Assembly (NCBI GenBank): GCA_033442325.1
Contig: JAWQFM010000011.1
Coordinates: 802,096 to 866,095 of the forward strand
From: Salpingoeca rosetta
Taxonomy: Eukaryota; Protista; Choanoflagellata
Reading direction: 5' to 3'
Length of the DNA: 64,000 nucleotides
The position numbers and the translations under genes were made by a program. Shown piece by piece: positions 1,270 through 61,432 of this stretch. The notes beneath the pieces were generated by a model. The model was not told the origin of the DNA and ran no database searches. It saw nothing but the letters and a program-made list of their open reading frames with translations. Numbering within the stretch: the stretch's first letter is position 1; every line of letters begins with the position of its first letter.

Positions 1270-1344
<75 letters not shown>

Positions 1345-3325
1345 CTGGTTCTGTGTGCCTGTGCCACTCTCCTCTTCATCAATTTATCTCATAGAGGTGG
1401 CCGGCACAATATCACGACACACACGCACACACATACTCCCCGCCAACACACGACACACGCACGACTTGCATTGCAGGGCTGTTGGCTCTGGTGATGGCGG
1501 AGACGGACCGCAGGACAAAAGCGCCGATCAGGACGACAGCAACACAGCGGATGATTCGTCCAGTGATGCCATTCGCGTCAGGTGCGTCTTGCAATTGCGT
1601 GTGTGTTTTTGTGTAGGATGATATCTATGGCGTACAGGGTGTACGACTTTCTGCCGTTGCGCGTTGTCTAGACATACACTCTCATACACACACATACACA
1701 CACACACACACATACACACACACACACACACCCTCTGTTCCCCCCCCCCACACACACAGGGTGCAGCAGCTGGAACAGGTCAACGCCGAGCTGAAGGGAA
1801 TGTGCCAGCGGCAGGAGGACCGTGCAAAGCAGCTGGCAGAGGTGTGCACAGACAAAGAGGGGGCGTGCTGCTTGTGCTGCGTGTGGCGTCAAATTGTGCC
1901 GTGCGGAGGCTTAGGCAGTACACGTGCGGTGACTGTTCTGTCTACAGTACCGTCGTTGTCACACCAGCAGCGCTGTGCTCTCTCCACCGCCATGATCCCT
2001 TACTCACACGATCCACTCTTCTTCCCCTCCCCTCCCCCCCCCTTTCTTGTGCGGTCGCCAGGAGAACAGCGAGCTGCGTGTGTCGTCGCAGCAGCTGCAG
2101 CAGCAGCTTGACACCGCCAACGCCGCTGTCGACGACGCGCGACGACAAATTGACGCGGATAAGGCCGCCCACGCTGCCGAGCTGGACGAGTGCGTTCTTG
2201 CGCTCTTGCAACTCCCAGCCACGCTCGCGATCATGTGTGCATGTGGTGTCGTGCATGTGCATGTTGTGTGTGTGCGTGTGTGTGCGTGTGAGTGCGAGGG
2301 AGGCGTCGTCGCGTTGTTGGTTGTCATTTGTGCTGCGTGTACCGTCTCCTCTCACCACCACCCACTATTCATCCGTTCACATGTTTACGTGCCAGGCTGC
2401 AGCAGAAGTACAGGCGAAAGCAGGCGGCGCTGCAGGAATTGCAGCAAGAGAAGGAGGACATGTACCAACAGCACACGAAGGTCGGGTGGCCCCACCGTCA
2501 CCTTCAACACGGAGTGGAGAGGGTGGTGGCTTTGTGTGTGCGTGTGTGTTTGTTTGTTTGTGTGTGTGTGTTTGTTTGTGTGTGTGTGTGTTTGTTTGTT
2601 TGTTTGTTTGTGTGTGTGTGTGTTTGTTTGTTTGTTTGTTTGTGTGTGTGTGTTTGTTTGTGTTTTTTGTTTGTGTGTGTTTGTGTGTGTTTGTGCTCTG
2701 ATGCGGTCAATGTGCAAGCAACCATTGCAGTCTGCAACTTCTTCTCCTCACCTTGACACGCATCTGTCTCCCGGCCGTTGCCTGTCGTTGCTTCCGAATG
2801 TGCTCAGGAGATGGAGGCGCTGAAGAAGAAGCACGAGAGCGAAGTGGAAGCGCTGCAGTTGAACGCGGACAACGAAACGCAATCCATGAAGAAAATGATG
2901 CAAGAAAAAGAGGAGGAAGCGGCGTCCAAATTGGCGGAGGTGCAGTCCGAATTGGAGCACCTCAAGGAATCCCTCTCATCTCACAAGGTTGGTGGTCACC
3001 CTGTATGAATGCGGTTTGAATGCGTTTTATGTTGTTGATCTGTAGGCTGCTGTGCTGGTGTGCGAGCCAGCTGCTGCAGAAGCGAACGTCATGAAATACA
3101 CGTGCGCACTCTCGCCCTCACACATACTCACACACTCACGCTCACACATGTATACATGTGCACCACGTGCGGCCAGGATGCTGCTGCGGACTTGGATGCG
3201 CGAGCGCGAGAGTTGGAGGAGACGCGGGCAAAACTTGCGACCGCACGCGAGGAAGCGGCAGCAGCACAGGCCGGTCCGTACTGCCGATCATGTCATCGTG
3301 TCGTGTGGTGTTTTGTGTGTGTGTG

Positions 3326-3383
<58 letters not shown>

Positions 3384-3886
3384 CATGTTCTCAAAGCACA
3401 AGTCTGCAGTTGCGTTCATGCGTTCATGTGGCTTTCATGTGTGCGCCTGTGTGTTGCGTTTGTCGTGCGCTGCTCTTCGTTGTTGCGCGCTGACGATCCG
3501 CGTACATGTGTTCATGCACTGCAGAGGCGGAGCGGCTGCGAGAGGAAATCAACGCCGATGACTCCAAGCAGAAAATCGAACAGCTCAACAAGGTAAATGT
3601 CGACGTGCATGTGCACACACACACATACACATACACACACATACAAATACACACACATACAAATACACACGGCTTACATTCGCATGCGTATCTGCTTTGA
3701 TTGCAGGATGTGGAGAAATGGAAGGAGCAGGTGGACGAGTTCAGCAAACAGCAGCAGGAGCAGCTTGCAAAGTAACAGGACGCTGGGCAGTGGTGATGCT
3801 GTGTGATGATGGCCTTGGCTACTGTGGAGATAATCGTGTTCCCCTCTTGCGTCACATGTAGCTCCCATGGTCTGCTCACAACTCCC

Positions 3887-3929
<43 letters not shown>

Positions 3930-4188
3930 CCATTGTCTTGACTTGCAGGCACACGAGGGAGATGGATGCACTGAAGGCGGAACACGAGGAGAAGATGAAA
4001 GCAGTGCAAAAGGAGCGGGACGACGCCCTCCATGCCAACGACCGTCAAGCACACAAGCACCAGCAGGTTCGTTGCAGGCCGGTGTTCGTGTGCACGTGGT
4101 AACGCTGGGGAGCTCTGTGTGTGTGTGTGTGTGTGCGTCATTGTACGCGCTGTACTTGATTCTGTTCACACATGGACAATGACAACCA

Positions 4189-4246
<58 letters not shown>

Positions 4247-5990
4247 ACTGCCAGGAAATTGCGCGGTTGCAAGCGCGCGTGTCCGCTTCGAGCAAAGTGG
4301 AGGAAGAGAAGCAAGAATTGTCTGCACAGCTGAAGGAAGCAGAGGCGAAGGCAGAGGCCCTTGAGGATGAGAAGCAATCCCTCAACACCCAGCGCTCGCA
4401 GCTCTGCGACCGTGGCCTACGCGTCCTATTCCTAGCCGTCGCCGCCATCACACGAACCAAACAGGTGTGTGTGTGTGTGTGTGTGTGTGTCTGTGTGTGT
4501 CTGTGTGTCTGTGTGTGTGTGTGTGCGCATGTGTGTGCGCGTGCATGGGTGTGTGTATGTGTGCGTATGACAGGTGTATGTGCGTATGACAGGTGTGTGT
4601 GTGTGTTGCACTTGCCATCCGTGCCCAATGCTGCGTGTCACCTCCTCATCTTCCCGCCGACTGCCCCCTCCCCGGCGGAAAACAGCGCGCGGCTGTGTCA
4701 AGGGTTGCGTTGGAGGAGAAAGTTGCTGCAGCGGAGAAGAGGGCCGATGAAGCCAAATCCCGCATTGAGCAGAGCGAGCAGTCCATTGCCGCCAAGACAA
4801 AGAAGGAGGCCGCTTTTGTACGTGCAGCGATTTGCTTCGTTTGTGTGTGCATATGTGTTGCGCGATGCAGCGTGCGTGTGTGTGTGTATGTGTATGCATC
4901 TGTGTGTTCTGTGTGTTCTGTGTGTTATGTGTGTGTGTGTGTGCATCTCATGTATGTTACCATGTATGTATTGTTTCCCCCCCTGTTTTGCAGCGACCAT
5001 CAGACATTCATCCTCCATGCATCACCTCACATTCTGCACATGCGTTCGACGACACCTTGTGTTGTGTTGCAATTCCTCCTTCTCCTCGTCTTCCAGATCA
5101 AAGAGCTGCAGAAGCAGCTGAAGCGCGAGCAGCGGCGGGCGGAGAAGGCCGAACGCGAACTCGCAGAGATCAAGCGGCCAGGTGTGTGTTTGGGATGCAC
5201 GTGCATGTACCTTCACACGCGCTCGCGTGTGTTTCTGATGGAAGACCTTCACCAAAGTAGTCAAAGAAGTCAAAGTACTTGCAAATGGCTCACCATCACC
5301 ATCATCATCATGATCATCACCACCACCACCATCATGTATGCGTGTGTACAGGCGACAGATCTGCCTCTCAGATGGGCTCTCCGTCGGTGTCCCGACGAGG
5401 TGCGTACGGGCAACAGCGGTTGCACATTCCGGTGTCAAGTGGATGCGTTGTTGAGTTGGTTGCGGTGAAGCAACGAAAGGACTTGAGAGTGAGCGCATGT
5501 GCATGTGTGCGTGCAAGTGCACATGCCCGTGGATATGACGTCAGCCGCAGCGGCATTGTACGCGTGTGCTCACTCTGTTGTCTCCCCCTCTCGCTTCTAC
5601 GTGTGTACACAGGCCATCATCGTCGTACTTCGTCGTCATCATCGTCACTGATCATGCGGTAGCTGGCCCTATGCAATGGCACACTGCCTCTCGCGCACCG
5701 CCACCACCACTACCACCACAGATACACACACACACACACACACAGATGATGACACCTGCCTCACGATGCCCCACGCAACACGTGCATGGCCGTACACGTG
5801 TGCACAGAGAGGCGCCGTCACTGGATTCCTTGAATGCATCGGACGCGCACTCCGTTCGATCGGTACATTTGCAAACAGCTTTAGTTTTTGCTTGATTTGC
5901 CACTTTGCGAACCGCGCATACACCCTCACTCACACACACGTATGCCTCTGTGTGTGTATGTGTGTGTGTGTGTGTTTCTCCTCCCTCCCT

Positions 5991-6068
<78 letters not shown>

Positions 6069-7156
6069 ATGCACTCAAACTCACACACACACACATACAC
6101 ACAAACACACACACGGAATAACCAGGTTGATTTGCAGATCAGCGAGAGTGAGCACGCGCAGCTGCTGTCGGATATGGTTGCAGTCAAGACCGAGCGGGAG
6201 GAGCTCAACGACAAAGTGAGAGCAGCGCTTGTCCAGCATGCGCAACAATGGCGAAGAATAGGCATACGCATGTGCGCGTGTGTGCGTGCGTGTGTGCGTG
6301 TGTGCGTGCGTGTGTGTGTGCGTATTGTGCGCGCCCTTCCAATACATGTTCTTGTGCGTGTGCATGTGTGCAGGTCCGCTATTTGGAGTCGAAGGTGCGG
6401 GACTTGGAGGGCGAGCTGTGCGCAAAAGCCATGCTCGTGGACCAGGTCATCCAGACCGGATCAACAAGTGCGTGTGTGCGTACATGGGTGTGCGTGTGCG
6501 TGCGTACGTGCGTGTGTGCGTGCATGTGTTGCATGATGCATCTTCCGTGTATGTGCTTCCCACCTTGGATGTTCAGCCACGTGTGCATGACAACCATCTT
6601 GCACCTCTGCATTGTGCTGCGTGCCCAGATTCATCGCCGAGCAAAGGCCACAAGAAGACGGGCGATAAGGCGCAACTACGGTGTGAAGGCAGATTGTGTG
6701 TGTGTGTGTGTTTGCACGTGGGTGTATGTATCCTTGTTCCTGTTGTTCATGTTGTTCATGTTGTTCATGTTGTTCATGTTGTTCATGTTGTTCATGGCGT
6801 GTGAAGAGTGCCAGCTGAATGACTGACCCGTGTGTGTCTTCCCCCACCGTGTCGCCTTCGTGTGCCTGCTTGGTTTACCTGTTAGGGAGAGCAATGACAA
6901 GCTTCGGGTATTGTTGGAGGAGACGCTACTCAAGAACATGCAGCTCGAGCAGGTGCGTGTGTGTGTGTGTGTTGGGGGGGGTTGTTCGCGTGTTTCGTGT
7001 ACTGTTTCGACGTGGCTGCATGCACATGCATGTGTGTTCGCCACTGCGAGTCATTCACACTACAGGCCACTGACAAACACAAACACGCACGCACACACGC
7101 ACGTACGCACGCACGCACAGATGGTGGAAGCGTTAACGCAGCAGGACAAGCAGTAG
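1..7156 (+). CDS. GRIPAP1: GRIP1-associated protein 1 (GRASP-1)-like long coiled-coil protein, >20 exons, 5' end outside window
   Basis: Spliced exons (e.g. 1-42, 249-305, 493-549, 791-970 ... 6885-6952, 7121-7156 TAG) give KDLAKANKAIAKSKKARETKAM...ELELQNKGLLENLAE; FIKELQKQLKREQRRAEK; ISESEHAQLLSDMVAVKTEREELNDKVRYLESKVRDLEGELCAKAMLVD; and C-terminal ESNDKLRVLLEETLLKNMQLEQMVEALTQQ. These match N-terminal, middle and C-terminal blocks of GRIPAP1 as I recall them ([51 protein letters not shown]). Confidence 0.8.
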
Positions 7157-7514
7157 GAGGACAACACCTGTAAACTAGCCAACAGAGGGAGAAGAAGAAC
7201 AAGGGTGTGCATGCACTCGTGCGGGTGTCTGCGTGTATGGTGCAAAGCCCTCACACCCATCGCGCGACAGTGCGACACATAAAAACATATAAGCATGAGT
7301 CATCGCCGGTTTTTGTTGTGTCCGAGCACAGAGACGACGAGAAACAGCTGCTGTCCACACAAACAAACAAACACACACAAGCAAGCCATTCCCCCCGACT
7401 GCTGTCTCGTCTTGCGCGTCAGCCACCCTCCCTTCGTTCTGCCACATACACGCTGAGGGAAGAATCAACTCCACATCATCATCATCATCATCCAACCTCC
7501 CCGCTGCCGCCACC

Positions 7515-12609
<5,095 letters not shown>

Positions 12610-29489: not shown

Positions 29490-29809
29490 CTTGTGGTTGG
29501 TTGGTGTTGTGTTGTGGTTGGTGTTGGTGTTTGTGGTGAGTGATGAGAGACAGGCAGCACAAGCAGCCGAAGCAAGCGCCACCAACAAGCATTGCATTCC
29601 AAACGTGGTCGTTGACAGCATTCCTCTTCGCAACTCCCAACGCAGTACAACGCAACCGGACAAACCCCTTCGGTGTGCGGATTGAAGGTCCTGTTCCGAA
29701 TACTGTCAGAGACATCACAAAGTGTGGTGTGGTTGGTGCAGCCGACGACTTCCTGCCTGCTGCACTGCATTTCCACCAGCCAGCCAGCCAGCACTCTGAC
29801 ACACCCAAT

Positions 29810-31130
29810 ATGAGCGGCAGGGTGCAGCTTGCCACGATGATTGAGGCGGCTGGGTTGATCCCCAGCACGGCCAGCCTCGTTCAATCCATCGCCAATGGCA
29901 CAGCCACAGGGCTCGTCAAGTTAGTAGAGCCCATCCACCCATCCTACCCATCCACCCATCCACAACGTGCCTTCACCCGCATGAGTGTTGTGGTTTTGGT
30001 GTTTTGCACCACACGCGTTTTGTGCTTCCTTGTTTATTCCTCACACTCGTGGGTGATGTGACTGTGTTTGACAATGGCATTGTATGGGAACAATCCGCCA
30101 GCTTCCAAGGGAGGCACATAGGAGATCTTGGATTGGAGGCTGTCATCCTCGCACTCAAGCACAGGAATTTCGTCGAGTGGCTCGAGTCAGTTTGTGTTCT
30201 TCAGTCTGTCCGGTTGACAGAGCAGCACCATGCAATGTGCAGAAGCCATGTGTCTTGTGTATTTGGCGCAGCATCTTGCCGCGTCTTGCCGTCTCTTGCC
30301 GCCGCTTCCTGCGTCTTGTCGCCGCTTCCTGCGTTTTGCGGCGTTTTGCGGCGTTTTGCGGCGTTTTGCAGCGTGGTTGGTTGTTGTTGTCTCACGCGTT
30401 GTTTTCCCTCTGAACTCAATTCTGACTTTGCGTTGGCACTGCAGTCTCACGGAGAACGACATTACGTCAGAGGGCGTGAGGGCACTCGTCACCGCCTTGA
30501 CCAACAACCCCACGCTGCACACGCTCACGTATGTGGTGTGCATTCATCAGCGCGCCTGTTTGGCTGTTTGCCTGGTTGGAAAGGCTCCCGGAACCTTTTG
30601 CAGACATCTTTGTCCTTTCTGCCTTGTGACACCAGCACGTGCACATCGCAAACGCACGACACAGGTTAACGAACAACACCCTGGACGATGCCGCCGCAGA
30701 GAGCCTCGCCAACCTTGTGGAGACAAACACTGTCGTGAATGCCATATCGTGAGTGGAGAACGGAACCTTGCACGCACGTGGATGGAAATGCGCACGGGTG
30801 AAAGGGTGAATTAGTGTGGCTCCCAGAATTCATGGCTGTGAACGTGATTTGCCTGCGCCTGCATTTTGCACGCGTTCCTCACGTCAAATGCGTTGATTGC
30901 ACATGCGCACAGGGTGTATGACAACCCCAACATCAGCCGTGCTGGCATTAACCGGCTCCGCGCTGCAGCAAACGCCCGTGACAACTTCACTCTTGGCGTG
31001 TACGTCCTCATGTTGTGTGTGTCTGTTGTGTCTGTGTGTCTGTTTCTGTGTGTGCATGCGTGGTGCATGTGTGCATGTGTGTGTGTGTTTGTGTGTAAGT
31101 GCGTTTGTGTGTCTGTTTTCTGTGCGTGCA

Positions 31131-31164
<34 letters not shown>

Positions 31165-31859
31165 GCGGCACCGCCCGTTGCTCCATTAGTCCACAATGCT
31201 CGGCTAACGCTGTCTTTGTCCGCTCTGTCCCACAACACCCCGTTGTTGTCGTTTTGTCATTAACCCGCCACATACAGGGATGATCCTGATGAAACCACAC
31301 ACACCCGGCACGTTCTTCGTCGCCACAACCACAATACCACGGGCAACACGCAGGCACACGACGACGACGACGACGACGATGACGACGCTGACGAGGATGT
31401 TCTACACGAAGCACAAACACCGATGTCAAGCAGGGTCTCACGCACGTCCATGTCATCACTGCGAACGCCTGATGCTTCCGGCGGTGCACCAGCTTTCACA
31501 CTACCTCGCCACCGTCAGCCGCCACCACAACATCAACAGCACCAGCACCAGCAGCAACAGGCAACAGCAGACCCAACCGTCGTGAACCAACTATGTACGT
31601 GACCACTCGTGACATGCTTGCTGCTTGTGTGTGTGTGTGTGTGTGTGTGTGTGAGTGAGTGTGTGTGTGTGAGTGAGTGTGTGCGTGTATGCATGTGTTT
31701 TCATGGGATTGTGCATGCCCTTCTGAATCATTGACACAAGCAAGTCTCACGTAACTCACTTCTGAAATGAACACTGCATACATGTGGTTGGTTTTCCTGC
31801 TGAACAGTGGACCAGCAGCACAGAATGCAGGAGCTCTTGGACGAGCGAGGTGTGGCTCT

Positions 31860-31937
<78 letters not shown>

Positions 31938-34900
31938 CGTCAGTTGTTGTCCCATCCTAATTGCGGATGTGTCTGCATGCAAACAGCCATGGAAGCTCGT
32001 GTTCCACGTGCTCATTTTCGTGCTGCATTGATCGGTCGGTTCTTGCAGACGCGACCATCGCCACGATGAGGGTGCAATTGGAGGAGCAGGAAGCAGCACA
32101 AACGCAAGCAGCAGCGGCCCTTATCAGCGAAAAGGAGCAGCTTCAAGGTGGGCCGACAACATGCGTGTGCCTCATCAACTCTGTGCAGAATACCTTGTTT
32201 CACCCTTTCGCTCTCGCACGCACACCACATAACATCTGATACGCTCGCCTCGCAATCCTGCCCGCTTACTTGCCTGTCGGTTCTTGCCCCTCAACAGCGA
32301 CAATCGCAGAGCTCACACAGACGAATGAGCAACGAGCAGAGGAGTGCGACCAAGCCAACGAGAGAAAGGCTGAACTCGCCCAGAGGCTGCAGACTGCCAT
32401 CGATGAATTGGGTGCGCTTGCATGATTGTTTTTGTATGTGTGTACGTGTGTGTGTGTACGTGTGTGTGTGTGTGTGTGCGTGTGTGTGTGTCTGTGTATG
32501 TGTGTTGTGGTACAAAAGGAGGGTCGTTTCGTTTGGATGACTTGTGGTTGTGGTGCACTGGGTGCATATGTCACTCGTCTTGTCACTCACGTTGGACTTT
32601 CGCGGCGTATTTGTGCGCCGCAGAATCGCTGAGGAGTGCACACGCCGACAGCGAGCAGCAGCAAACTGATCTGACGGAGCGCATCAAGGCAATGAAGGAA
32701 GAGATGGAGGACTTGCAGCAAGCAAAGGACGACGTGGAACAGAGCAAGGCAGACCTGGAGACCAGACTCGCAACGCAACTTGGTATGGCTACTTCTGCTT
32801 CTGCTTTTGCGAGTGAGCGTGCGAAAACAAGAAAGAGAAAAGCATAGAGAGGAGAGAGGGGGTGTGCGTGCATGCGTGCGTGTATGTGTGTGTGTGTGTA
32901 TGTGTGTATTGCGCTCACGCGACGCTGGATGTGTCGGTTGGGTGTTGTCATTCTTGCAGAGACCCTCAAAACTCAGCACGAGCAGAAGGTGAAGGACCTC
33001 GGTGAAGCAAATGAAGCGTTACAGACGCAAAGGAACACGCTGCAACAACAAAACGAAAGCAATGCGCAGGCGCTGCGAGATGCCCGCGCAGAGATTGGTG
33101 AGGCTGCCCACTCATCCTGCTTTGCTCTGCTCTGCCTTTCCCCTCAATTGGTAGGGTTTCTGCTCCCGTTTGCCTTGTCACTTTTCGAGTTCCAACGTGG
33201 GCGCCCCTTTCTTCTTTTCTGCTCTGTTCAAACACACACGGACGCACACGCGCGCGCAAACACACTCACACACACTCACACACGCTTAATACACACACCC
33301 CGCATAACGTACATGACACGCCACCCACGTGAACCGTGACACAGAGCGGCTTCAACAGGCCTTGCAGGAGCCAACGACCAGCGATTCAGAGGACGCAGGC
33401 GCCACATCAGCGAAACCGCCACCAGGTATGAACTGCGTTTGCGTGCTGAGGAGGATAAGTCATGCATATCGAATCATGCACATCGCTGGTGTTCACACAC
33501 TGTTTCTGCATGCAACTCATTTGTGCTCTTCTGACTCACATCCACGTTCACCTATGTCGAATTCTTTGTGTCACGTAGGGCCAGACACACCAACTTCGCT
33601 GCAAGAAGCCGAAGCAAAGCTTGGTGCGTTTCTCTGCGCATGTGTGCGTGTCTGTGTGTCTGTATGTGCGTGTATTTCTGTGCGTCTACGTGCGTCTATG
33701 CATGTCTTCGCTGTGTGCGTGTTGTGCTGCTTGCTGTGTGTTGACTTGCATCGCGCTTCTCCCCCTGTTGTGCTGTTTGTGCGCGATTGCGAGCGCACGA
33801 GTCACACATCCGCGTGCGGTTCTCACACGCCGTGTGCGTCGCCCCATGCGTTTTGTTGCAACCGCACCAGAGGGCATGCTGAACCTGAACATGGACCTCG
33901 CTCGCTTCACCACGAGGGAGCGCGTGGTGGATGACAAGGGCGACTTCACCAAGGGTGGCTACGGCAAACTGTACCGCTGCACCATCGCAGGCCACGACGT
34001 CGCACTGAAGGAGATTGACGTGCGGTCGCGCCCTCGTTTGCTTGAGATTCTCTCGGAAAAGTCAAACACGCAAGCCCATGCAAATGACAAGCGGGTCCGA
34101 CGAGAGGTGGCCATTCTGATGACCCTCAGGCACCCCAACATTGTTTCGTTCTATGGTATATGCTACGACGCCGAGCGGAAAACGCTCTCCTTTGTTCTGA
34201 GCTGGGCAGACAACGGCTCCCTGTTCGACTTCATGCACCTTCACAAGCGCCAGATCAGCCACGTCGATAAGCTGCGCATCTTGAGCGAGGTTGCCGGCGC
34301 CATGGAGTTCCTGCATGCCCACGACGTGGTGCACCGCGACCTCAAGTCTGCCAACGTGCTGCTGGACGCTGTGCTCTCCGCCAAGGTGACGGATTTTGGG
34401 CTGAGCACGTTCAAGAACACGGAGACATCTTCGCTGTCCCGAGTGGCTGGAACGCCACTTTGGGCGTCGCCCGAGCAGGTGCTGGAGGAGAAGTTGCGCG
34501 CGGACACGGACGCGTTTTCCTTCGGCTGCCTGGCGTGGGAGGTGTGGTTTGCTGTCAAGCCATGGCACCATGGCAAGTATGAAAAGGACGGCATATCGCT
34601 GCTGCAACTTGCCCTCAAGTACGAGAAGCACGAGTACCTGCCGCTCGAGAAGGTGATCAACGGACAGGAGATGCCGGTTCACCTGCGAGCGCTCCTTCGT
34701 GGCTGCTTCACCACGAGTGGTAGCCGCCTCAGCTTTGCTCTGCTTCACGCAGCATTTAGGGGACAGTACGCCGCTGCCCGTGAGCAGCGTCAGCTGAACG
34801 AGGCACGACAGCAGGAGTTGTTGCAAGGGCCACCCGATGCTGTGTGGAAGTTCGACCCTGAAATCCTCGCAACACTGAAGGAGAAGAAGCATGCGTTGTC

Positions 34901-35032
34901 AACCCGTGACACGGTGTACGTCGTGCCGCTTGATCTTGGGAACCAGGATGAGGCCAGCCTTGTCAAGACGGTGCGTATGTGTGTGTGTGGGTGGGGGGAG
35001 GGGCGGACGGGGTGATGTGTGTGTCTGGCTGT

Positions 35033-35094
<62 letters not shown>

Positions 35095-36077
35095 ATGTAT
35101 GCGTTTTCTGTCTTTGGTGCGCGCTGCTCGCCTCACCGTCCCATTGTCATCACAACTCTCACACCCCTGCCCTTCTCTCTGCTTTGTATTCTGCTCTTAT
35201 CTTCATCCACTGCACACCACAGCTCCTTCGTCAGGCTGGTGGCCGCACCGCTCGGCAGCCAGACCTTCTTGGGCCATTTGGTCGCAAGGTCGCGGCTGCT
35301 GTTATTACATGGTGTGATCAGAAGCTTGCAGCGTTCAATGGCGCCATGCATCGCAACAAGACGCGCTTTCGCGGCCACCTCACCAGCACCAGCCACCCAT
35401 TTGCACCCAAGTATGAGGTTGATGATACTGGCGCTGCCACCAACGCTGAGGAGAAGGCAGTTCTTGATCGTGTCACCACGAAGACCGGCCACTACAGGCT
35501 GTTGGATGCGTCCCTCATGAAACAAGATCCACCGCTTCGCGTCCAGCGTGTTTTTCATGGCGTCAACAGCTTCGATGCTGTCGTTGGCATCTTGGGTGGT
35601 GACTTTGCTCCGCTTCAGAAGACGGACATTGGCTGGTTTGGCGCAGGCCCCTATTTCACACCAGACCTTGATTACGCGCTTGAATATGCACATGACTGCG
35701 ATGGCGCCGACGTGCCAGCCGATCTTCGTTTCCTCCAGCTGACACCAGGCGAAGTGTACCGCATCGTCCTCGTGTGCGACGTGACGTACGGAAACCCTTA
35801 CCCAGTGACCAAAAACAGCTTGCACCCAATGGTGCAATCGACAGCAGAGGACAAGCTTCCGACAGAGAGGTGGCAGACATTTGCTGGCCTGCCGCTGGTT
35901 GCTGGGCACGACGCACACATCGCAGTGACTGCCTTTGACTCGAAAAGCGTCGATTACGTCCCCCCATTTGACACTCATGCTGATTGGTCCCAGCCTGGCG
36001 AGAAGCCAGTGGCCGAACTTGTGATCAGTGACACGTCTTGTGCGCTTGTTCGTGCGGTGTGTGTATTTCAAGGTTGA
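29810..36077 (+). CDS. LRR - coiled coil - TKL-type Ser/Thr protein kinase - PARP-like ADP-ribosyltransferase fusion protein
   Basis: N-terminal RNI-like LRR exons (NFQGRHIGDLGLEAVILALK; LTENDITSEGVRALVTALTNNPTLHTL; LTNNTLDDAAAESLANLVETN; VYDNPNISRAG). Coiled-coil exons ~31807-33097. Kinase exon 33871-34970 has KGGYGKLY, VALKE, HPNIV, HRDLKSAN, DFG, GTPLWASPE, DAFSFG. Last exon 35235-36077 has RVFHG, GWFGAGPYFT, VLVCDVTYGNPY, GHDAH, AELVI (H-Y-E triad). Confidence 0.88.
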
Positions 36078-37342: not shown

Positions 37343-37442
37343 NNNNNNNNNNNNNNNNNNNNNNNNNNNNNNNNNNNNNNNNNNNNNNNNNNNNNNNNNN
37401 NNNNNNNNNNNNNNNNNNNNNNNNNNNNNNNNNNNNNNNNNN
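37343..37442. other. Assembly gap (100 N) next to an (AG)n microsatellite
   Basis: Run of n. Confidence 0.99.
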
Positions 37443-61073: not shown

Positions 61074-61432
61074 NNNNNNNNNNNNNNNNNNNNNNNNNNN
61101 NNNNNNNNNNNNNNNNNNNNNNNNNNNNNNNNNNNNNNNNNNNNNNNNNNNNNNNNNNNNNNNNNNNNNNNNNNNNNNNNNNNNNNNNNNNNNNNNNNNN
61201 NNNNNNNNNNNNNNNNNNNNNNNNNNNNNNNNNNNNNNNNNNNNNNNNNNNNNNNNNNNNNNNNNNNNNNNNNNNNNNNNNNNNNNNNNNNNNNNNNNNN
61301 NNNNNNNNNNNNNNNNNNNNNNNNNNNNNNNNNNNNNNNNNNNNNNNNNNNNNNNNNNNNNNNNNNNNNNNNNNNNNNNNNNNNNNNNNNNNNNNNNNNN
61401 NNNNNNNNNNNNNNNNNNNNNNNNNNNNNNNN
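61074..61432. other. Assembly gap (359 N)
   Basis: Run of n following (GT)n. Confidence 0.99.

Follow-up and report, generated by a model that had tools for sequence, protein, structure and literature searches.

A choanoflagellate protein that carries leucine-rich repeats, a coiled coil, a TKL-type kinase and a PARP-type ADP-ribosyltransferase domain in one chain

RESULTS

One 15-exon gene encodes the entire protein

The window analyzed here is a stretch of 64,000 nucleotides from the choanoflagellate Salpingoeca rosetta (contig JAWQFM010000011.1, positions 802,096 to 866,095), and all coordinates below refer to it. Positions 29810 to 36077 of its forward (+) strand constitute a single gene of 15 exons, whose product is the 1132-aa protein XP_004994575.1 (P0005), publicly labeled just "serine/threonine protein kinase." Of its 14 GT..AG junctions, spliced RNA contigs (run X3) contain 13, among them the one that joins the kinase and PARP exons in frame; the other one (31849/32049) was placed from the reading frame and the length of an RNA contig. 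The coding sequence rebuilt from the RNA-contig junctions is identical to XP_004994575.1 across all 1132 residues.

An earlier interpretation of this DNA, prepared without database searches (the sequence-only reading), had both limits of the gene right (start codon at 29810, stop codon at 36075 to 36077) and held that all domains belong to one transcript, as is borne out by a single reading frame and by an RNA contig (run X3, depth 104) that joins 34970 to 35223 in frame. It had placed the acceptor of the last intron at 35235, and this needs correction: the RNA contig puts the first exon base at 35223, making the junction 34970/35223. Two raw RNA-seq runs (X13 and X14) cover the gene at a depth of at most 0.5x, indicating low expression in both, and yielded zero junctions. 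Pile-ups in these runs at ~33.6 kb and ~35.0 kb, along with an apparent joint between opposite strands (33648/34978), were treated as cross-mapping from another transcript because each rests on GT-rich matches of 21 nt whose loose ends are unrelated. Pfam searches of the neighboring large open reading frames in the window supplied no functional context, the sole hit being one TPR protein.

LRRs, linkers and a coiled coil precede the kinase

Exon 1 (29810 to 29919; junction 29919/30102 in an RNA contig of run X3) supplies the start codon and an N-terminal cap (aa 1 to 37). It is followed by four leucine-rich repeats (LRRs; aa 37 to 150) of 28 to 29 aa, in register with exons 2 to 5 (30102 to 30185, 30445 to 30528, 30665 to 30748, and 30913 to 30999), each of which is 84 to 87 nt long, is in phase 2 at both ends, is bounded by RNA junctions and encodes one repeat. 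The repeats are RNI-like, as originally proposed, and the Pfam model LRR_6 scores above threshold (26.5 bits, with the cut-off at 23.4). Four LRRs form a small surface, which speaks against a sensor.

Exon 6 (31278 to 31594; aa 150 to 256), defined by its translation and RNA junctions, encodes a disordered, low-complexity linker that is acidic (poly-Asp) and Gln/His-rich. The coiled coil noted previously then occupies exons 7 to 11 (31808 to 31849, 32049 to 32147, 32298 to 32411, 32624 to 32782, and 32960 to 33097; approximately aa 256 to 440), all of which are in phase 1. It comprises ~190 residues within aa 250 to 450 that are free of Pro and Gly and have a strong heptad periodicity, 5 to 10 times background. 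Modeled as a homodimer, it is predicted to self-associate in a parallel, in-register arrangement with an ipSAE of 0.47 (best control, 0.00). Of 30 proteins whose solved structures pair two copies of one chain, 21 attain this mark, compared with 0 of 23 whose structures hold a single chain (among eukaryotes, 17/29 and 0/30, respectively). Separate runs have 98% or more of their contacts in common, and the partner pLDDT is 88 or higher.

A Pro/Ser/Thr-rich linker (exons 12 and 13, 33345 to 33425 and 33579 to 33623; aa 440 to 482, delimited by RNA junctions and the exon table) connects the coiled coil to the kinase. The N-terminus of P0005, upon inspection of its sequence, is not signal-peptide-like, and the 1132-aa protein is putatively soluble and devoid of a transmembrane segment.

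The kinase and PARP-type domains each occupy one long exon

As anticipated in the sequence-only reading, the kinase and PARP-type domains are each confined to one long exon (exons 14 and 15). Exon 14 (33871 to 34970; aa 482 to 848) encodes a domain that, judged by Pfam and its motifs, is an intact TKL-type kinase, again as originally described. Pkinase scores 138.6 to 140.3 bits against a cut-off of 31.7 (E value of 1e-40) and PK_Tyr_Ser-Thr scores 129.8 to 131.9 bits (3e-38). Every catalytic motif is kept: VALK (aa 525 to 528; 33999 to 34010), HRDLKSAN (aa 636 to 643; 34332 to 34355), DFG (aa 656 to 658; 34392 to 34400), and an APE-like SPE; in the G-loop, the third Gly is substituted (GGYGKL). 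The closest solved kinases are CTR1, JAK2 and EGFR, and NCBI names one paralogue "TKL protein kinase."

Intron 14 (34971 to 35222), a phase 0 GT..AG intron of 252 nt that is rich in GT microsatellites, separates the kinase from exon 15 (35223 to 36077), which encodes the ADP-ribosyltransferase (ART) domain (aa 849 to 1132) and the stop codon. Here, the two Pfam models suggested for the protein part ways: Pkinase passes, and PARP (PF00644) remains below its gathering score (18.3 to 21 bits versus a cut-off of 26.7). Because Pfam alone makes no PARP call, the assignment required evidence from profiles and folds. Searched against the PDB, a profile built from 93 relatives of the ART domain matches PARP catalytic domains and nothing else, with E values of 1.7e-8 for ZAP/PARP13, 2e-6 for PARP10, 1e-5 for PARP12, and ~1e-4 for tankyrase. 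PF00644 matches 65 of these 93 relatives, and its cut-off is exceeded by Paulinella P0039 (34 bits), metagenomic P0029 (32 bits), and three divergent S. rosetta copies (L039, L037 and L038, at 33.9, 33.7 and 26.9 bits), which themselves match the family profile at ~1e-47.

Predicted structures point to the same superfamily. An AlphaFold model derived from an alignment of 12 paralogues was unusable (pLDDT of 37), which was remedied by supplying all 93 sequences (pLDDT of 95.9, pTM of 0.92). The best 50 Foldseek hits to this model are PARP catalytic domains throughout, at a probability of 1.00, and its VIA superposition on PARP12 (Z score of 14.6, root mean square deviation [rmsd] of 2.6 A) covers 157 of 182 PARP12 residues. 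Matches to PARP15, PARP14, PARP10 and tankyrase are tied with PARP12, and for the PARP10/12/13/14/15 group, Z scores are 14.0 to 14.6 with rmsds of 2.4 to 3.1 A over ~157 residues. The absence of a predicted ART fold had been named in advance as grounds for abandoning the fusion; the model instead adopts a PARP fold.

The H-Y-E triad lies at precisely the codons first reported: H960 (in FHG, 35556 to 35558), Y992 (in GAGPYF, 35652 to 35654), and E1113 (in AELVI, 36015 to 36017), and in the alignment all three fall on the triad columns of PARP10 and ZAP. Among the 93 relatives, Tyr is conserved in 93, Glu in 91, and His in 75; among 12 aligned S. rosetta copies, His and Tyr are present in all 12 and Glu in 11, with Asp in its place in L010. 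Eight residues past the triad Tyr is Ala1000, in a column that is Ala in 82 of 93 relatives and that, judged by this spacing rather than by a residue-level structural alignment, appears to correspond to the nicotinamide-contacting Ser of PARP1 (S904). Since Ala appears at this position, NAD+ binding may differ from that of PARP1. The domain lacks the DNA-sensing and helical regulatory domains of PARP1, has ~100 extra N-terminal residues and a variable insertion flanked by "GNPYPV" and "GHDAHV," and shares with its family a nearly invariant D-x-H motif of its own. By sequence profile and predicted fold, then, the C-terminal domain is a PARP (ARTD) superfamily ADP-ribosyltransferase with an H-Y-E triad.

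A cassette-like ART exon on varied front ends

A count of paralogues, which the sequence-only reading had recommended, reveals 36 ART exons (loci) with varied front ends in the S. rosetta genome, among them 23 close copies; at least 18 immediately follow a kinase exon. Upstream of the ART exon, the paralogues carry LRRs, ankyrin repeats, coiled coils or an LRR-Roc-COR-TIR assembly: P0014 consists of ankyrin repeats and the ART domain alone, and P0011 has the ART exon at the end of LRR-Roc-COR-TIR. In 20 of 20 paralogue loci examined, including those with non-kinase scaffolds, an AG acceptor lies exactly at the counterpart of aa 849 or no more than two codons away. The modular exon shuffling proposed at the outset thus accords with an ART exon that acts as a cassette, whose phase 0 acceptor is conserved on kinase and non-kinase scaffolds alike.

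A tblastn search with aa 1 to 481 returned no match in the 20 paralogue loci at an E value of 1e-3, and for this reason, front-end homology was assessed solely through the Pfam hits of annotated proteins. The phylogeny of the ART domain is poorly resolved (3 of 25 inner branches are well supported); in this tree, the nearest paralogue is P0004, and the ROCO-TIR copy does not fall clearly outside the kinase-linked copies. Pfam detected no NACHT, NB-ARC or death-fold domain in P0005 or 19 relatives and no Roc, COR or TIR domain in P0005; among the relatives scanned, Roc-COR occurs only in P0011. One kinase copy (C4:2208125) was considered as a case of a different C-terminal effector and dropped, as the "5515-aa open frame" downstream of it is 11.6 kb of N.

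Beyond S. rosetta, the sequence databases hold kinase-PARP fusions from Microstomoeca, Didymoeca, Paulinella, Cryptomonas, Apiculatamorpha and metagenome contigs. Among characterized animal PARPs, none is known to be joined to a kinase or to LRRs, and to this extent the original claim that such fusions are absent holds; it does not extend to the databases, where they are many. The architecture is therefore uncharacterized, not unique, being numerous in S. rosetta and present in other protists. Literature searches (by accession and by choanoflagellate, PARP and kinase terms) recovered no description of a kinase-ART family, which likewise goes unmentioned in PARP surveys (including PMC4245714) and in a survey of choanoflagellate gene families (PMC6040629), probably because the ART domain is sub-threshold in Pfam and the genes are filed as kinases.

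DISCUSSION

Our preferred explanation combines the anatomy described above, an output from two enzymes, and membership in a diversified recognition-plus-effector family, and as a whole, we give it a probability of about one half. Its components differ in strength. The anatomy itself (LRRs, linker, coiled coil, kinase and ART) is close to certain, and it is reasonably probable that both enzymes are active; a role in sensing or defense is tentative. Under this explanation, the coiled coil would hold two chains in a parallel dimer, setting two kinase-ART units side by side, and the dimer may be constitutive rather than triggered. The LRRs would set kinase activity, either through binding of a partner or ligand or through autoinhibition, and the kinase and ART domains would mark their own chain and nearby targets with phosphate and with mono- or short oligo-ADP-ribose from NAD+. 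The family would then amount to a diversified cytosolic set of recognition-plus-effector proteins that respond to biotic cues or to stress, with a logic analogous to that of immune receptor-effector fusions. We favor such a family because a 3' cassette, either kinase-ART or ART only, joins varied front ends in 23 close paralogues. Family expansion and domain shuffling also fit signaling outside defense.

Among known systems, the compact ART domain, without the helical domain of PARP1, most resembles animal clade 3 PARPs (PARP10/12/14/15 and ZAP/PARP13), which are its best matches by profile and by fold. The PARP10/12/13/14/15 group is interferon-linked, and the PARP10/12/13/14 group is tied to antiviral defense. 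PARP10 and ZAP, however, have a hydrophobic residue at the third triad position, where the S. rosetta domain has Glu, and the partners of the animal group are macro, WWE and CCCH domains rather than LRRs, a coiled coil and a kinase. Tankyrases 1 and 2 share the layout of a C-terminal H-Y-E PARP domain that follows target-recognizing repeats and a self-associating module, and their fold is tied with the best (Z scores of 13.6 to 13.9), but they employ ankyrin clusters and a SAM polymer, contain no kinase, and are only weakly similar in sequence (~1e-4 with the family profile); this likeness in layout is probably convergent.

Within choanoflagellates, the lineage-specific Kinase TIRs and Kinase TLRs also wire a kinase to LRRs and/or an NAD+-related signaling domain (Richter et al. 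2018, PMC6040629). Theirs is a TIR domain, accompanied by a transmembrane segment in Kinase TLRs, whereas the present protein has a PARP-type ART and no TIR hit; the term PARP occurs 0 times in that paper. ROCO/LRRK-type proteins are large soluble multidomain proteins that likewise carry N-terminal LRRs ahead of a TKL-type kinase but have a Roc GTPase and COR where this protein has its coiled coil. Four protist fusions (Paulinella chromatophora P0039, Didymoeca costata P0069, Cryptomonas paramecium P0154 and Apiculatamorpha spiralis P0049) place a kinase upstream of an ART of the same subfamily; they are far more distant (E values of 1e-12 to 1e-23, versus 1e-140 for the S. rosetta paralogues) and have other front ends, such as a SidE-type phosphodiesterase in Paulinella, and none is characterized. 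The likeness to NLR/STAND receptors is one of logic alone, as NACHT and NB-ARC are absent from the Pfam hits.

The alternative that survives best, although we consider it somewhat unlikely, is an ordinary intracellular signaling or scaffolding enzyme with no part in recognition or defense, in which the LRRs and coiled coil do no more than localize a kinase-ART pair that regulates the cytoskeleton, the cell cycle, the development of colonies or the response to stress. Its logic would be that of tankyrase, which is paralleled by the combination of repeats, an oligomerization module and an H-Y-E ART and by the tied fold. The Ank-plus-ART paralogue P0014 also counts in its favor, as does the finding that Ank-PARP combinations originated several times (Perina et al. 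2014, PMC4245714). In the same direction, Pfam scans of P0005 and 19 relatives detected neither a death-fold domain of the immune type nor a NACHT domain. A set of 36 copies with swapped front ends, one bearing TIR and Roc-COR, is, however, a poorer fit to housekeeping, and the best profile matches are to the animal PARPs with an interferon link.

It is improbable that the ART domain is mainly an NAD+-consuming, NADase-like effector of suicide or growth arrest, switched by the kinase, rather than a modifier of proteins. The intact H-Y-E triad would suit this role, as would the position of the ART exon behind a TIR domain in P0011, given that the TIR fold is an NADase in SARM1 and in bacterial defense. 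Sequence cannot separate hydrolysis from transfer, and the PARP-fold enzymes characterized to date are known to transfer ADP-ribose to acceptors rather than simply hydrolyzing NAD+. Also on the side of NAD+ consumption, the catalytic Glu of SARM1 is conserved in choanoflagellates (Richter et al. 2018, PMC6040629).

We consider it equally improbable that the ART is a catalytically dead binding module, as in ZAP/PARP13, leaving a protein that is functionally just an LRR kinase. The top single PDB sequence match is the inactive PARP domain of ZAP, the domain falls under the Pfam PARP cut-off, and Ala stands at the nicotinamide Ser position as assigned by spacing; but ZAP lacks the triad in the alignment, and the S. 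rosetta family keeps H, Y and E (E in 91/93, Y in 93/93). Finally, it is very improbable, and already largely refuted, that faulty annotation or assembly has merged an LRR kinase gene with a distinct PARP-like neighbor: although the whole gene is covered by a chain of overlapping RNA contigs from one study and not by any single contig, one contig spans 34970/35223 in frame, retention of intron 14 would introduce a stop after 15 codons (35013 to 35015), and the kinase-intron-ART arrangement is repeated at 17 further loci and is matched in proteins derived from the transcriptomes of other species.

Returning to the recognition-plus-effector reading, its most specific form, which we put forward as speculation, is that S. 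rosetta and its relatives possess a diversified family of cytosolic receptors in which LRR, Ank or ROCO-TIR recognition modules share a single chain with a kinase and an H-Y-E ART related to the PARP10/12/13/14 group. Whatever its role, the protein brings enzymes for phosphorylation and ADP-ribosylation together in one polypeptide, behind recognition modules that are interchangeable within the family, and the genetic tractability of S. rosetta makes this a compact natural setting in which to study how the two modifications are coupled. Should the defense reading fail, 36 unannotated PARP-type genes are still added to a reference genome. Should it be true, PARP-based immunity would extend to before the origin of animals, in a form once without NLR or death-domain adaptors, and the H-Y-E state of this family would be the one from which animal mono-ART PARPs are derived.

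Gene structure and transcript

The gene encoding P0005 (1,132 aa) lies in an intron-dense, typically eukaryotic region of the Salpingoeca rosetta assembly (55.4 Mb in 68 contigs; the window corresponds to C11:802096-866095), with GT/CA microsatellites inside introns. An exact protein look-up identifies P0005 as EGD72752.1, XP_004994575.1 and UniRef100_F2U8P4. Its public title is "serine/threonine protein kinase [Salpingoeca rosetta]"; an annotation of the gene therefore exists, but it names only the kinase. No literature was found under its accession numbers.

Four runs were aligned over window positions 29780-35775. In one of these, X3, the contigs leave out 13 intervals, each beginning with GT and ending with AG; X3 is therefore evidently assembled RNA. 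Exact exon boundaries were set by script from the X3 contig junctions, and junction 31849/32049 was deduced from the reading frame together with the 139 nt that a contig has between the neighbouring pieces. The resulting gene comprises 15 exons (29810 to 36077), with 1,132 codons plus a stop, and is identical to the public annotation at every residue. An X3 contig (depth 104) joins the kinase exon in frame to the exon encoding the ADP-ribosyltransferase (ART) domain, from 34970 to 35223; retention of this intron (intron 14) stops the frame after 15 codons. The sequence-only reading had placed the ART-exon acceptor at 35235, 12 nt too far downstream, but its other coordinates were exact. This transcript evidence consists of several overlapping contigs from one study rather than one molecule, and raw RNA-seq coverage of the gene is 0.5x or less in both runs.

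Relative to the assembly, the base at 29945 (intron 1) is missing from all four runs, and most reads disagree with the assembly at the intronic repeat positions 33276, 33647 and 34992; these mismatches represent either assembly errors or cross-mapped repeats. The window contains runs of N at 37343-37442 (100 bases, just downstream of the gene) and 61074-61432 (359 bases, near the window end).

Domain architecture of P0005

The N terminus contains four RNI-type LRRs of 28 to 29 residues (aa 37-150; LRR_6, 26.5 bits against a cut-off of 23.4), each encoded by one phase-2 exon of 84 to 87 nt. The translation continues with a low-complexity linker, poly-Asp and Gln/His-rich (aa 150-256), and a coiled coil (about aa 256-445) with strong 3.5-residue hydrophobic periodicity and free of Pro and Gly. 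When two copies of aa 256-445 were modeled together, a parallel, in-register dimer was predicted over the full length (ipSAE of 0.47 versus 0.00 for the best of three controls), with contact agreement of at least 98% among runs and a partner pLDDT of at least 88. Among proteins solved as same-chain pairs, 21 of 30 attained 0.47, against none of 23 solved as single chains (17/29 and 0/30, respectively, in a eukaryote-only calibration). The modeling supports, short of proof, self-association of the coiled coil.

The protein kinase (aa 482-848) has intact VALK, HRDLKSAN, DFG and SPE motifs (Pkinase, 1e-40; PK_Tyr_Ser-Thr, 3e-38), and its closest solved structures are CTR1, JAK2 and EGFR, in keeping with a kinase of TKL/TK-like type.

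The C-terminal domain is a PARP-superfamily ART

The C terminus scores 18 to 21 bits with Pfam PARP, below the cut-off of 26.7, and a profile of 12 paralogues barely reached ZAP in the PDB (E of 0.09). Because these matches were weak, the paralogue profile was run against 1.84 billion representative proteins, returning 237 matches at an E of 1e-3 or better and 23 at 1e-30 or better. In an alignment of 93 ART-domain relatives (A2), 65 sequences match PF00644 (top, 1.7e-14). The A2 profile has 105 PDB matches, and all 60 among those listed are PARP catalytic domains, led by ZAP (1.7e-8), PARP10 (2e-6) and PARP12 (1e-5) and followed by PARP4, PARP2, tankyrase, PARP15, PARP14 and PARP16.

An AlphaFold model built with A2 as input (pLDDT of 95.9, pTM of 0.92) leads to the same superfamily: the best 50 Foldseek matches are all PARP catalytic domains (probability of 1.00). 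VIA-align superimposes the model on PARP12 with a Z score of 14.6 (rmsd of 2.6 Å, 157 of 182 residues), with PARP15, PARP14, PARP10 and tankyrase within one Z unit. An independent protein-language-model search also returned PARP clusters. Profile, fold and language-model evidence being consistent, aa 849-1132 is a PARP-superfamily ART domain.

The triad residues H960 (RVFHGV), Y992 (GAGPYFT) and E1113 (VAELVIS) align with those of PARP10 and ZAP in HMM alignments and are retained in 75, 93 and 91 of the 93 A2 relatives, respectively. Family-specific features include about 100 additional N-terminal residues, a variable insertion behind GNPYPV and a nearly invariant D-x-H motif (GHDAHV). Judged by spacing, a family-specific Ala presumably occupies the position of the PARP1 nicotinamide-binding Ser. 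The proposal, made before any database search, that LRRs, a coiled coil, an intact kinase and an H-Y-E PARP-type ART reside in one protein is thus confirmed by spliced contigs, Pfam, profiles and fold.

Relatives in other organisms

A close relative, P0021 of Microstomoeca roanoka, combines Ank, coiled coil, kinase and ART. Less closely related kinase-ART fusions are found in Didymoeca costata, Apiculatamorpha spiralis, Cryptomonas paramecium, Paulinella chromatophora and metagenome contigs, such that the architecture is rare, yet not unique. In P0039/P0151, from the P. chromatophora transcriptome, a kinase and a PARP domain (34 bits) accompany a phosphodiesterase domain of SidE type (104 bits), a pairing of ART and phosphodiesterase that recalls the phosphoribosyl-linked ubiquitination performed by Legionella SidE.

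Kinase-fused PARPs are not mentioned in the PARP evolutionary surveys of Citarelli 2010 (PMC2964712) and Perina 2014 (PMC4245714), the latter listing eight PARP types in choanoflagellates. Richter 2018 (PMC6040629) reports "Kinase TIRs" and "Kinase TLRs" as choanoflagellate-specific and never mentions PARP.

A paralogue family built on a terminal exon cassette

Searching the S. rosetta genome with the A2 profile yields 36 strong ART loci, 23 close to the P0005 copy and 13 more divergent (E of 1e-40 to 1e-46). Among four divergent copies tested, three score above the Pfam PARP cut-off, and ordinary transitive homology thereby connects the family with PARPs. The nearest paralogue of P0005 is P0004 (68% ART-domain identity).

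A kinase exon lies directly upstream of the ART exon in at least 18 of the 23 close copies, and the modules in front vary. LRR_6, kinase and ART occur together in P0005, P0003 (which also has a coiled-coil-type match), P0004, P0006, P0012 and P0023; coiled coil, kinase and ART in P0002 and P0007; Ank, kinase and ART in P0013; and Ank and ART in P0014. P0011 (PTSG_11903; 1,728 aa; C4:885200-895000) combines LRR, Roc, COR, TIR and ART, making it a ROCO protein in which two NAD+-related domains stand in place of the kinase.

The AG acceptor at the position homologous to aa 849 is exact in 17 of 20 paralogue loci and within two codons in the other three, including copies without a kinase. Because it is kept in all 20, the ART domain constitutes a conserved phase-0 terminal exon cassette, and the suggestion of modular exon shuffling is accordingly supported.

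The divergent loci include C24:1202260-1202919, C27:6148-6834, C34:18174-18839, C32:33797-34384, C2:37546-38211, C25:56143-56841, C33:64104-64769 and C13:1698675-1699349, with five others besides. At least 8 of the 13 are no more than about 65 kb away from a contig end, a distribution that points to a subtelomeric gene family. The 3-kb stretches around four divergent loci yielded no kinase.

Three further loci deserve description. In C25:881600-891400, an uninterrupted 2,814-aa ORF (1310-9754 of the stretch, minus strand) with a weak AAA_7 (dynein-type P-loop) match immediately precedes a PARP-like terminal exon, with no kinase in between. In C4:1048700-1058500, tandem PARP-like exons (6855-7676 and 8695-9456) lie about 1 kb apart, and the 6.8 kb upstream yielded no kinase exon. 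A close kinase paralogue at C4:2208125-2209117 runs into 11.6 kb of N, either a gap in the assembly or withheld sequence, which hides its C-terminal part.

Discussion

P0005 places two enzyme domains, both apparently competent for catalysis, in one chain with a small LRR module and a probable parallel dimerising rod. As modeled, the rod would hold two kinase-ART units side by side, and the LRRs may bind a partner or restrain the enzymes. Outputs would be phosphorylation and mono- or short oligo-ADP-ribosylation: unlike PARP1, the ART domain lacks DNA-dependent regulatory domains, and mono-ARTs are its structurally closest group, although elongation of chains would also be compatible with the H-Y-E triad.

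Among the readings of the family, a role in recognition or defence is the likeliest, although we give it a probability of only about one in three. It ranks first because the family has expanded and its recognition modules are swapped, because one paralogue bears a TIR domain, and because of the affinity to PARP10, PARP12, PARP13 and PARP14. Non-defence signalling is less probable on this ranking, as is an ART domain acting as an NADase-type effector; a pseudo-enzyme, with the triad residues in place, is also placed below recognition or defence. Of the sequence-only reading, then, the fusion architecture stands, modular exon shuffling is supported, and the recognition or defence role is retained only at the odds stated. 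P0005 of the reference organism S. rosetta is a new, so far uncharacterised form of known kinds of enzyme.
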